Source of the DNA: Bugula neritina
Taxonomy: Eukaryota > Animalia > Bryozoa
Assembly (NCBI GenBank): GCA_964035545.1
Contig: OZ037772.1
Span: 2,666,001 to 2,730,000, forward strand
Direction: 5' to 3'
DNA: 64,000 nt
The notes under the pieces were generated by a model. It was not told the DNA's origin. It worked only from the letters and a program-made list of their open reading frames with translations, and did not search any database. Position numbers and translations under genes: made by a program. Below, piece by piece: positions 56,281 to 60,200 of this stretch (position 1 is the first letter of the stretch; the number at the start of each line of letters is the position of its first letter).

Positions 56281-56385
56281 TAGAGTCACTTGAGCTCTCT
56301 GGCTTGAGTTTACACACCTTTTAAATATGCTTTAGTAGAAACATAAGTTTCTACTATTGCGAAGGTGTGGGCCATGGTACTCTGT

Positions 56386-56432
56386 TCTGTGCTGATGAGG
56401 GGACAAACCCCGAAACAGCTGCTGTCCACAGA
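56386..56432 (+). ncRNA. Type I hammerhead ribozyme
   Basis: TCTGTG-CTGATGA-GGGG ACAAA CCCC-GAAA-CAGC T GCT-GTC^-CACAGA: complete core, stems I/II/III; predicted cleavage after 56426. Confidence 0.93.
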
Positions 56433-56657
56433 TTGAGGTATTATGCTCTCACTTAATGCTCAGCAATGACATTCAGTGATTGAGCTCTCTCACCATGGTC
56501 ACAAACTCAAGCTGCTAGCATTTTGCAAGGCTCGTGACTCTTAGGTGACCCCTAGAGTCACTTGAGCTCTCTGGCTTGAGTTTACACACCTTTTAAATAT
56601 GCTTTAGTAGAAACATAAGTTTCTACTATTGCGAAGGTGTGGGCCATGGTACTCTGT

Positions 56658-56704
56658 TCTGTGCTGATGAGGGGACAAACCCCGAAACAGCTGCTGTCCA
56701 CAGA
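56658..56704 (+). ncRNA. Type I hammerhead ribozyme
   Basis: Identical to 56386-56432; predicted cleavage after 56698. Confidence 0.93.
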
Positions 56705-56975
56705 TTGAGGTATATATATATATATATATATATATATATATATATATATATATATATATACATATATATATATATATATATATATATATATATATATATA
56801 TATATATATATATATATATATATATATATATATATATATATACATATATGTATACATATATATATATATATAGAGTCACTTGAGCTCTCTGGCTTGAGTT
56901 TACACACCTTTTAAATATGCTTTAGTAGAAACATAAGTTTCTACTATTGCGAAGGTGTGGGCCATGGTACTCTGT

Positions 56976-57022
56976 TCTGTGCTGATGAGGGGACAAACCC
57001 CGAAACAGCTGCTGTCCACAGA
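56976..57022 (+). ncRNA. Type I hammerhead ribozyme
   Basis: Identical to 56386-56432. Confidence 0.93.
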
Positions 57023-57247
57023 TTGAGGTATTATGCTCTCACTTAATGCTCAGCAATGACATTCAGTGATTGAGCTCTCTCACCATGGTCACAAACTCAA
57101 GCTGCTAGCATTTTGCAAGGCTCGTGACTCTTAGGTGACCCCTAGAGTCACTTGAGCTCTCTGGCTTGAGTTTACACACCTTTTAAATATGCTTTAGTAG
57201 AAACATAAGTTTCTACTATTGCGAAGGTGTGGGCCATGGTACTCTGT

Positions 57248-57294
57248 TCTGTGCTGATGAGGGGACAAACCCCGAAACAGCTGCTGTCCACAGA
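57248..57294 (+). ncRNA. Type I hammerhead ribozyme
   Basis: Identical to 56386-56432. Confidence 0.93.
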
Positions 57295-60200
57295 TTGAGG
57301 TATATATATATATATATATATATATATTACATCTTAACATTTTATCTGATGATTGTGTACATTCTATGCACATGAAACTAGTAGTAAAAAAGTGTTTTAA
57401 ATCAAATTTTATCGTTCTTTACTTTTATTTATTTACTCTGCTCTGCACTGCATTGAGCTCTCTTTAGTGGTAAACTATACACCATTATATATATATATAT
57501 ATATATATATATATATATATATATATATATATATATATATATATATATATATATATATATATATACTGTAGAATGATTTTTTGGACTTTTCAATCAGCAT
57601 ATGGAAAACTGTAGTCAAAAAACAAGTGATCAAAATATTTATTTTATATAAATAAAAAGTGAAAAAAAATTTAAACAATTATTGCAAAATAATACTTGCA
57701 TAGACTTGCATGCCATATTAATTACAAGTGTAGGCTAAATAACAAAAGAATGTGATATATACCATAACAGTTTATAAAGTAGAATTTGTGACAACAATTT
57801 ATAGAACAGAATAATATTATAAATTCAACAACGCTGCAGCACTTTGAAACACAAAGCGTAAAGGTGCAGTCAGTACACAGAGTTTGTTGATGTAATATAG
57901 TGTTATATCAAAGTTTTAATGCTATATATGGGCTGACAGTCAAGCAGCAACCTACAAATAATTATATATATATGTGACCAAACACTACAATCTATACAAT
58001 CTATTCAATTGATTACAGATTGATAATAACAATAAAATTATATATATACAAGCGTTATAATTTCATTGAAAAAAATTGGTAAAACTGCTGTTTAATAAAT
58101 ATGATTCAACTTTTGATGAATAGTTTCAAAAATATTTTTAGAAAGTTTAGATTATTAATTATTATTAACATACACAGAATTGCTTTCAACCTCTTCAAAA
58201 AATCACAAGAGAGACAATTGCTAATACACAAAAAGAAAACAGAAATAATGTTGCTGAAACATAAGTTTATACAACAGTGTTTAAAGTATCATACTTTATT
58301 ATGACATAATTTAGTATGATAATATGAGAGGCAATCATGGCACAGGTAATGATATTATGGCACAGGTGATAATGACATGGTAAGAAGGGCACACAGCGAA
58401 AAGTAGGAAAACATGGCACACTTATGTTCAATTTTTCTAAACACCCATTCTCACCCTTATACCCTAATACTGAAAATGTGCCATTCTTACCTATTTTTCC
58501 ACTTGTGCCATAATAACCTGTATGTGCCATTTTAACCATAGACACCACCCACAATGCATCAATTGGAAAAGATTCAAATCAACCTTTATTGCTGAATTAT
58601 GAACCAACTCAAGGAAATCCTCCTGTAATTCTCCTGGAATCTTTTTGACAAAGCGTTGGAATTTGTCACATGTCAAGCTAAGAATCTAGCTCTTTCTTTT
58701 TAAGAGATAGCTCAGAAAAATATCGTTAAAGCTCTATTGTGCTCTAGTGTGCAATTTTACTTATGACATTTTTATTTATTATCGGCACTTGTTCTCCTAT
58801 AAAAGTTTATTAAGTGTGTGGAAAAACACCACAATTTAGAAAAAGGCGCCACCACTTTAGTGTAACTTTAGAAACATTGACGCTGCTATGAAAAGCAATG
58901 ATATATGATGATTGCACTCCTGCATGTTTAGGCTCAGATTATTTAGAGTAGCAAATATATTTACAAGGTAAATGTAGTATACAGTTTATAGAGATTGACT
59001 TGCATGGCTGCTAAAAGTTGGCCTGTTAGTTCAAGCAGCAAATTTTTTGACCTCCATTTGAAAGTAGCACAGAAAGCAGTTAGGGTAGAGTAATTAATAA
59101 ACACATCCATGTCAAAGTAAACTGATATTGCAGAATATAGTTTTGCTAAATAAGGGAGCTAAGATAAAGGTTTACAGAAATATACACATATAAATGTAAC
59201 TTGCCAGAACCCAAAAAGCCTTCATCAAACCTTGTGAATTTTTCAAATTTCAAATTCTTCCCTAAAATGTCGAATATTTCCCCTAGGAGAAATCTTCTCC
59301 CAGGTTGGGAAACTCTGAACAAGACATGTAAACATGAATATTACCAAGTGCATGCATTGCTATAGTTACTAGACTGTTGGGTTACAACTCACAATATTTG
59401 TAAGCTGAAGAGCTATTAATAGAGATGATGATAATGCAGTATAAATTAGTCAGTCTATTATCATGAGTTAGTCACTGCTGATATTATGCTATGCAATGGC
59501 TAACAGTCACATAGCAACTTACAAATAATTCTACTATTTATTATGATTATTATGACATCTATGATGAGGAAATAAAATGTGCCTTTACATACACATCATA
59601 TTTTGTGTAAACAAGTGTTTAAATACAGTTGAACATCTGGTGTTCGAAATTTGTTTTTTTTTTGTTTCAAATGTTGATAAAATACAAATCAAAAAATATT
59701 TTTCAATAAATAATAGTAAATTATGCTGAAGAACTAATGTGGACTTGTAGAATAAGTTCGCAAGAGAAGTAACTCCTGATTAACATGATTAAACAGTCAC
59801 AATAATATTCCTGAAAGATTCCTAGAGCCTAAAGTTCATACACTATTGTGATGCAGTAAGTATTCTATAGAGTTGGTATTGATATTGCAGTACAATTAGG
59901 TCATGAGCTTTCACCAGGCATCAAGTTTTTACCTCCACTGATGGAGTAATCTTAGGTTTGTAAATAATGGCCACTGTAAAGTAGCCATATCCAAAAACTC
60001 AGTTTTCTAACCATCTCAACTGATGGACATGTGATGTGTGTGACACCAGGAGGTGTAGAAGTAATAAATGGAGACACTCTGGATACTATCAGCTCAGTGA
60101 AACACACCAACACTACATGGTGGTGGGAGATAATCCAACCTGAAGGGTTGGTGGTTGTCAGCTGGTATAACAGAGCGGAGAATACAGCTGGTTTTAAGAC

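Follow-up and report, generated by a model that had tools for sequence, protein, structure and literature searches.

Organisation of the locus

We have analysed a 64,000-nucleotide (nt) stretch of the genome of Bugula neritina (contig OZ037772.1), which we refer to as the window, and in which a long (TA)n tract, located at positions 55880-57570, is broken by two blocks of direct repeats that carry hammerhead ribozyme motifs. We consider it probable that a 272-nt non-coding hammerhead retroelement, i.e. a metazoan retrozyme without long terminal repeats (non-LTR retrozyme), was inserted here once, and that a recent duplication of this insertion has given the two copies present at the locus.

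The repeat search of the window has revealed a 161-nt direct repeat in four copies, which start at positions 56281, 56553, 56871 and 57143; the distance from each start to the next is 272, 318 and 272 nt, in this order. In block 1, the repeats are located at 56281-56441 and 56553-56713, so that the block has a length of 161 + 111 + 161 = 433 base pairs (bp); the two 433-bp blocks, at 56281-56713 and 56871-57303, are identical base for base. An earlier reading of the same letters (hereafter the original prediction) had proposed tandem hammerhead-bearing repeats, which the repeat search recovers, in a split of 158, 114 and 158 bp, which is the same as ours minus the TA-ambiguous edge bases; one block was correctly described there, and the second, identical block (56871-57303) was left undescribed.

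Each block is composed of a 5′-truncated unit, followed by a full 272-bp unit and a 12-nt tail, CACAGATTGAGG, amounting to 1.54 units, and includes two complete canonical type I hammerhead motifs; all elements of the two blocks are read on the forward strand. Block 1 is preceded by the (TA)n microsatellite that constitutes the target tract (55880-56280), which has a few TG/CA interruptions. The truncated upstream unit (56281-56426) covers positions q127-272 of the unit, where q is counted from the cleavage site, and ends in hammerhead 1 (56380-56438; predicted scissile bond 56426/56427). Hammerhead 2 is located at 56652-56710, with its predicted scissile bond at 56698/56699; the 3′ strand of its helix I (56699-56710) coincides with the element's invariant 3′ end. 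A (TA)n spacer (56711-56870) separates the blocks, and in block 2 the corresponding motifs are hammerhead 3 (56970-57028; predicted scissile bond 57016/57017) and hammerhead 4 (57242-57300; predicted scissile bond 57288/57289).

Spacer and block together form a duplicated period of 590 bp, the two instances of which differ by one mismatch and four gap columns, and identical TG/CA interruptions are found just upstream of both blocks. From this near-identity and the common flank interruptions, the 590-bp period appears to be either a very recent tandem duplication of the insertion together with its flank, or a duplication made by the assembler. In the former case, the block and its (TA)n flank would have been duplicated in tandem after the insertion, probably via unequal exchange inside the microsatellite.

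An older, 5′-truncated solo copy of the same family is located within (TA)n at 62249-62406 of the reverse strand; it starts near q128, has one hammerhead, and bears GGGG/TCCC in helix II, together with a GAGA tail, as subfamily markers.

The hammerhead motif and its predicted RNA product

The motif has the hammerhead core CUGAUGA, followed by helix II (GGGG-ACAAA-CCCC) and GAAA, then by helix III (A-CAG-CUG-CUG-U), while helix I is formed by UCUGUG/CACAGA and is lengthened by CUC/GAG across a UGU/UU internal loop. Residue C17 is located at positions 56426, 56698, 57016 and 57288. Since the open end is helix I, the motif is a type I hammerhead. A helix-aware descriptor, which requires the core and all three helices, detects the four motifs of the blocks and a fifth motif at 62263-62297 of the reverse strand, and has no match in 100 first-order Markov simulations of 64 kb; for the 25-nt core string, the expected chance count is 0.00. 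The intact type I hammerhead with an extendable stem I, which the original prediction had placed at the end of each repeat, is therefore recovered with its core and three helices complete.

Cleavage at both GUC sites of block 1 would release positions 56427-56698, and the coordinates of this 272-nt span agree with those given earlier; the cleavage and the 272-nt circle are both predictions from the letters. The linear 272-nt monomer is predicted to fold at −109.9 kcal/mol (z = −7.4) and the circular monomer at −103.5 kcal/mol, with 71% of its bases paired (z = −7.6). The G+C content of the unit is 45%. As had been proposed, no protein appears to be encoded: on the concatemer of the unit there is no open reading frame (ORF) of more than 21 codons, the longest ones having 20-21 codons. 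We have also considered a short interspersed nuclear element (SINE) derived from a tRNA, and have rejected it, as ARAGORN reports no tRNA-like gene, and hence no tRNA-like head, in positions 55800-57700 (A and B boxes were not searched separately).

One variant of the motif occurs in a tandem copy at locus L058 (5942-5990; G000:C1:18156xxx), where the internal hammerhead has an 8-nt duplication inside helix III (CAGCTGCACAGCTGCTGTC); the unit-to-unit alignment of this copy is broken by a 12-nt gap.

The family across the genome

In order to place the locus within its family, we have searched the whole assembly (216 Mb, 321 contigs). The BLAST search with the monomer has returned 740 candidates; the 79 matches that were scored have 97-100% identity and are located on all large contigs. 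At least 316 3′ junctions follow the pattern ...GCTGCTGTCCACAGATTGAGG + TATATA with at most one mismatch, 77 of them exactly, and most of the one-mismatch matches listed have the GAGA tail; the internal junction between units, with the pattern ...GAGGTATTATGC, occurs 45 times. The reversed-pattern controls for both counts are zero. The comparison of 45 internal with 316 3′ junctions indicates that most insertions hold one unit or less. By the identity of its copies, the family is young, and the proposal of a young mobile element holds at the scale of the genome.

Across the 42 distinct loci that were examined, nearly every copy has CACAGATTGAGG, or its GAGA version, directly abutting (TA)n: the copies end with ...GUC|CACAGAUUGAGG, followed by (TA)n, and it is their 5′ ends that vary. 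Their lengths range from about 50 nt to about six units, and copies of exactly one unit stand out as a sharp class. In order to avoid bias in the sample, the sizes of the classes have been taken from the first 34 exact 3′ junctions listed, which correspond to 33 independent insertions. Fifteen of the 33 are 5′-truncated, starting at q28-227; eight comprise exactly one unit, starting at q6-13 (P~2e-7 if starts were uniform); nine comprise one unit and a partial upstream unit, which in six cases starts at q239-252, inside the upstream hammerhead (P~1e-6); and a single insertion comprises exactly two units. Loci L006, L014 and L001 hold longer copies, of exactly 2.0, exactly 3.0 and about 6.0 units, respectively. 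Two complete hammerheads are kept in 5/33 insertions (about 15% of young insertions): the two-hammerhead layout of the window is a minority state of the family, and the window locus is one ordinary family member.

The same counts bear on the possibility that the repeats are a satellite-like tandem repeat, spread by DNA-level processes such as unequal exchange and segmental duplication, with the hammerhead as a passenger. Arrays of up to about six units, the 590-bp duplication of the window, a 461-bp duplication at locus L078, both of which are DNA-level events, and the classic newt hammerhead, which sits in satellite DNA, would suit this explanation; however, it has to account for hundreds of dispersed insertions on all large contigs, most of them with one unit or less, and for an invariant 3′ end, graded 5′ truncations and a strict (TA)n location in the examined copies, which are hallmarks of retroposition. 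We regard it as very improbable.

Some further observations on the copies and their surroundings are worth recording. Locus L078 (G000:C3:19440201-19442308) is a second case in which a retrozyme copy has been duplicated with its (TA)n flank; both instances start at q84 and have the same flank interruptions, and tandem duplication inside (TA)n microsatellites, seen here and in the window, seems to be recurrent. Where a copy exceeds one unit, the preferred start of its upstream partial unit is q229-252, within helix II or the core of the hammerhead, so that the upstream ribozyme is dead; very short copies do not pile up at the same hammerhead positions. Genome-wide, (TA)n is interrupted by GG (TATA-GG-TATA) 33 times at 23 loci (three times in the reversed control), for example at G000:C4:13397693-13397740 and G000:C2:6644960-6645063, some loci having a periodicity of 12, 14 or 42 nt; AGG(TA)n pieces are also found just upstream of some retrozyme copies (L016, L018, L006). 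The GG-interrupted pieces may be abortive insertions, in which only the last bases of the element were copied.

Insertion mechanism

The combination of a fixed 3′ end, graded 5′ truncation and a constant (TA)n target is the signature of target-primed reverse transcription. As the copies extend to a 3′ end 12 nt beyond the scissile bond, the RNA from which they were made must have been continuous across this bond, i.e. either uncleaved or circular. The linear, hammerhead-cleaved 272-nt monomer has thus been rejected as the template, since no copy ends at GUC and every copy examined runs 12 nt beyond it.

We have also examined how the start site may be set. In tandem copies, the internal sequence that follows GAGG is UAUUAUGC, and a register-shifted junction, GAGGTATTATATAT, would be an equally good register for priming by UAU microhomology, yet it has no occurrences. 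We consequently do not accept microhomology as a sufficient explanation of the fixed 3′ end: the start site is set more precisely than microhomology permits. At the other end of the copies, many 5′ junctions are located on short TA-like microhomologies, such as TATTAT at q13, TAG at q127 and ATATGC at q168.

The junction pattern fits the behaviour of the enzyme of the Anolis Penelope-like element, for which reverse transcription begins at defined internal sites downstream of the hammerhead, with no homology to the nicked DNA (PMC11167929). In that system, unprocessed multimeric RNA is the dominant in vitro substrate, and hammerhead mutants left insertion unaffected (PMC11167929).

We propose that the copies would arise by target-primed reverse transcription at nicked (TA)n, with the enzyme being supplied by co-resident, (TA)n-targeting Penelope-like elements that encode a reverse transcriptase (RT) and a GIY-YIG domain. 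Reverse transcription would begin at a fixed internal site beside the hammerhead, on a template that would be continuous across the cleavage site, be it a circle formed by ligation or a transcript that is uncleaved or multimeric. Only the copies with two complete hammerheads, among them those of the window, could be transcribed and self-cut to the 272-nt monomer, which is predicted to fold into a highly paired structure and to circularise, like published retrozymes.

Co-resident Penelope-like elements

The genome contains many Penelope-like elements, of which we have sampled three families: A (L055, 3436-5559), B (L060, 3611-5752) and C (L062, 3130-5262). All three have intact ORFs of 700-714 amino acids (aa), and end directly in (TA)n, and each has a minimal type I hammerhead of its own, at a distance of about 130-150 nt from its 3′ end. 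The ORF of family A has a YRDD motif of RT, a Cys-rich linker and a GIY-YIG-like C-terminus, as read by eye, and its Atlas neighbours are RVT_1/GIY-YIG/HTH_animal clusters; the 708-, 714- and 711-aa ORFs of families A, B and C match no Pfam family even at E ≤ 10, so that we assign them as putatively Penelope-like from these motifs and neighbours. A bias for (TA)n has been published for Naiad and hypothesised for Neptune-type elements with such a linker (PMC8557442).

In families A and B, units are joined head to tail, as in the retrozyme: the junction is ACATTAT|TATTGCTCC in family A and GAGGTAT|TATGCTCTC in the retrozyme. By eye, we have also found a short motif, TTGAGCWCTCT, in the retrozyme and in the 5′ regions of Penelope-like elements, and TATT..GCTC, which is shared at the unit starts of both. 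From the shared target, architecture and junction anatomy, rather than from homology, we infer a partnership between the retrozyme and Penelope-like elements.

An alternative is that the blocks are themselves solo pseudo-LTRs (pLTRs), or terminal fragments, of an autonomous Penelope-like element. The Penelope-like elements of this genome do have hammerheads near their 3′ ends, partial tandems and (TA)n ends, fragments of them are found within 4 kb of the blocks, and in Xenopus retrozymes are homologous to pLTRs (bioRxiv 10.64898/2026.07.22.740005). The structure of the blocks nevertheless argues for a separate element: full-length copies of exactly 272 nt form a discrete class; the repeats are separated by only 111 nt, which are non-coding; none of the 33 insertions continues into coding sequence, the unit running instead into (TA)n or unique flank; and the hammerhead is canonical, with long helices, 12 nt from the 3′ end, in place of the minimal hammerhead located about 130-150 nt from the 3′ end in Penelope-like elements. 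The unit also lacks BLAST similarity to families A, B and C, which do not include all the Penelope-like families of the genome. We therefore give very little probability to a pLTR origin of the blocks, and the view of the original prediction, that the element is not a Penelope terminus, is upheld by the 33 insertions and the three sampled families.

Within the window, about 4 kb from the blocks, two fragments of family A correspond to the N-terminal part of the RT (60646-61017, reverse strand) and to the GIY-YIG part (61091-61396, forward strand), and are 88-92% identical to copies with intact ORFs of 700-708 aa. We consider family A a candidate source of the machinery, and not a part of the retrozyme element. 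The two fragments are in opposite orientation, about 70 bp apart (60646-61396); inverted fragment arrangements are typical of Penelope-like elements. They are bracketed by a 32-nt direct repeat (60663-60694 and 62031-62062; 94% identical, spacing 1368 nt), which also brackets a stretch with repeated and inverted segments that contain GATCGATCT (61299-61979); some other element may have inserted here in a nested fashion.

Directly after block 2, 158 nt of the forward strand (57329-57486), ending with ...CACCATTA and followed by (TA)n, contain a minimal hammerhead-like motif (TTTTAT-CTGATGA-...-GAAA-CTAGTAG-TA) and TTGAGCTCTCT; the stretch looks like the 5′-truncated 3′ end of another Penelope-like family, and BLAST finds no match for it in families A, B and C.

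Lastly, the minus strand of locus L068 (G000:C1:29212719-29214365, at about 905-330) has a family-A-like 3′ end, 5′-truncated and 72-80% identical to L055, directly next to an older retrozyme unit of full length whose end is at q11; no (TA)n separates the two, and a younger retrozyme copy is located after the next (TA)n. The arrangement may be a chimera formed by template switching or a nested insertion, the two being equally possible; template switching, if true, would tie the retrozyme and family A to one enzyme.

Evidence against the assignment

The points that weigh against our interpretation of the locus concern the motif, the partner, the junctions, the assembly and the RNA. As regards the motif, no Rfam family is found at gathering score in the whole window, and Hammerhead_1 (RF00163, clan CL00010), the model with which the original prediction had suggested an Infernal check, is not listed even at E ≤ 10 for stretches of 501 nt and 74 nt, so that this check failed to return the expected match. 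There is no covariation support: in an alignment of ten copies that includes diverged copies, the covariation term is a penalty (+1.28), with three double changes. Mutations of the copies affect the core and the stems alike, and the variants of the motif look like random decay. As regards the partner, a BLAST comparison of the 272-nt unit with families A, B and C, at a word size of 7, returns nothing apart from the palindromic hairpin of the element itself, and the partner element is not pinned by homology among the three sampled families. Target-site duplications are unreadable inside (TA)n, and the identical blocks could be an assembly duplication. As regards the RNA, cleavage and circles have no read-level support, two poly(A) runs labelled as another organism having given zero reads, which is no test, and contigs cannot reveal ends or circles, so that no ends or joints are recoverable from them.

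The Rfam and covariation results would suit a hammerhead-like motif that is catalytically dead or fortuitous, and that does not self-cleave; the same could be said of the short helix III (an A-U pair and 3 bp, with a 3-nt loop), as ribozymes of this kind can cut poorly as monomers (PMC7229834, axolotl Rtz_331). At E ≤ 10, Hammerhead_3 is found at 14.9 bits in the wrong register, and the RAGATH-1 hammerhead model is the only one that aligns the whole core and the three helices, with a score of 19.1 bits where the cut-off is 56.3. We read the Rfam result as reflecting the limits of the models rather than the absence of the motif, and make the hammerhead call from the motif. RNAalifold does not recover the hammerhead fold from the ten-copy alignment, and the lack of a covariation signal is attributed to the family being too young for the test. 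All invariant core positions and the three helices are present, 80 of the 108 motif instances in the fetched loci are identical, and the CAGCUG palindrome in helix III would allow the dimeric active form that is known for such elements. We consider a dead or fortuitous motif very unlikely.

RNA of the element is likely to be abundant, on evidence that is suggestive only. The element is fully covered by contigs of a 260-Mb run labelled as RNA-Seq (“symbiont metagenome”), with a summed word depth of 2,600-32,000 (no control stretch), far above the depth of a few hundred DNA copies at about 1x coverage, and contigs that are about 95% identical to the element are found in an oligo-dT metatranscriptome.

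Circular versus linear template

The junctions indicate a template that is continuous across the cleavage site, and the distribution of the 5′ ends may carry information on its form. As a tentative variant of the proposed mechanism, which we consider possible but rather unlikely, the 272-nt circular RNA would be the template: the RT would start at the fixed site and go round once, so that stopping at its own primer would give exactly one unit, and a short strand displacement would give one unit and 33-56 nt, with larger copies arising from occasional further rolling or from the copying of dimeric or trimeric circles. A circle is necessarily continuous across the cleavage site. Among the 23 copies of one unit or less, eight are of exactly one unit, while 6/9 of the copies with a unit and a partial unit end 33-46 nt into the second round; the lack of a pile-up of very short copies at the hammerhead positions argues that these ends are not a block that the enzyme meets on its first pass. 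Moreover, Penelope-like enzymes can initiate internally without homology (PMC11167929), and retrozyme RNAs are mostly circular in other animals (PMC7229834).

On the other hand, uncleaved linear or multimeric transcripts would give the same fixed 3′ end, and are the dominant in vitro substrate for the Anolis Penelope-like element (PMC11167929). The one-unit class could also result if cleavage at q1 produced a 5′ end that was then joined at TATTAT (q13), a TA-like microhomology, and both the one-unit and the second-round classes could stem from 5′ ends that upstream cleavage or a transcription start had produced. Whichever model is chosen, the copies of 2.0, 3.0 and about 6.0 units require templates that are multimeric, and the circle is predicted, none having been observed here. 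It is possible, but in our view rather unlikely, that the genomic copies are a fossil record of animal retrozyme integration, in which the bimodal 5′ ends reflect single-round copying of the 272-nt circle. If this were true, the record would be genomic evidence for the circle, and not a linear transcript, as the transposition template in animals, and the circle template could be tested conveniently in this (TA)n-embedded family.

Comparison with known systems and significance

Hammerheads have been known in repeats of animal genomes since 1987, and such repeats were recognised as retrozymes in 2020. In newt satellite 2 and in Sm-alpha of Schistosoma, a type I hammerhead is located in a short repeated unit that is transcribed to monomer-sized RNA; the copies described here are dispersed, retroposed microsatellite insertions and not long satellite arrays, and the SINE-like Sm-alpha has a distinct structure of its own.

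The metazoan non-LTR retrozymes were described by Cervera and de la Pena in Nucleic Acids Research (2020; PMC7229834), and the tandem-hammerhead layout attributed to them in the original prediction is indeed that of the published elements. Like them, the present family has a canonical type I hammerhead, a head-to-tail unit in the range of 150-450 bp (here 272 bp), copies from dimers to multimers, a G+C content below 50%, no ORF, a monomer that is predicted to be highly self-paired, and a co-occurrence with Penelope-like elements. As for the absence of LTRs, the repeats are successive tandem units (a primer-binding site and a polypurine tract were not searched for specifically). Unlike the retrozymes of PMC7229834, most insertions are single or 5′-truncated, with one hammerhead; the target is strictly (TA)n, and the 3′ end is invariant, at 12 nt beyond the scissile bond, the words “microsatellite” and “target site” being absent from PMC7229834; moreover, cleavage and circular RNA are here predicted from the sequence.

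The Penelope-like elements with a Neptune-type RT and, at the C-terminus, a GIY-YIG domain, and their hammerhead-bearing pLTRs (PMC8557442, PMC11167929), share with the retrozyme the partial tandems, the hammerhead near the 3′ end, the (TA)n or AT-rich targets, the 5′ truncation, and the location of the 3′ end of the insertion downstream of the hammerhead; the last feature is expected from internal initiation on RNA that spans the ribozyme. The retrozyme differs from them in having no ORF, a length of 272 nt in place of about 2.5-3 kb, a canonical instead of a minimal hammerhead, a distance of 12 nt between hammerhead and 3′ end (about 85-150 nt in Penelope-like elements), no detectable similarity of sequence to families A, B and C, and no optional “tail” variants of 30-40 nt.

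Li, Clavereau and Pollet (bioRxiv 2026, 10.64898/2026.07.22.740005) have described retrozymes as non-autonomous derivatives of Penelope-like elements. The present family resembles theirs in its co-occurrence with Penelope-like elements and in its mixture of monomers, dimers and multimers, most of their families having at most seven units; in Xenopus, however, the link is pLTR homology, which is undetectable here, where the link consists of shared target, architecture and junction anatomy. The family belongs to a kind already known, i.e. non-LTR retrozymes, which we infer to depend on Penelope-like elements.

How retrozymes return to DNA, and by which enzyme, is still deduced rather than demonstrated. 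What the family adds for specialists is a clean junction record: it is young, it has a moderate copy number, and it has a target in which both junctions are readable, so that its junction statistics are unusually clean. In this record, reverse transcription starts invariably at one place next to the ribozyme, the template extends across the cleavage site, the copies of one unit form a discrete class, and intact Penelope-like elements with the same preference for (TA)n are co-resident; it turns the two proposals, that retrozymes ride on Penelope-like elements and that the circle is the template, into specific, testable predictions.

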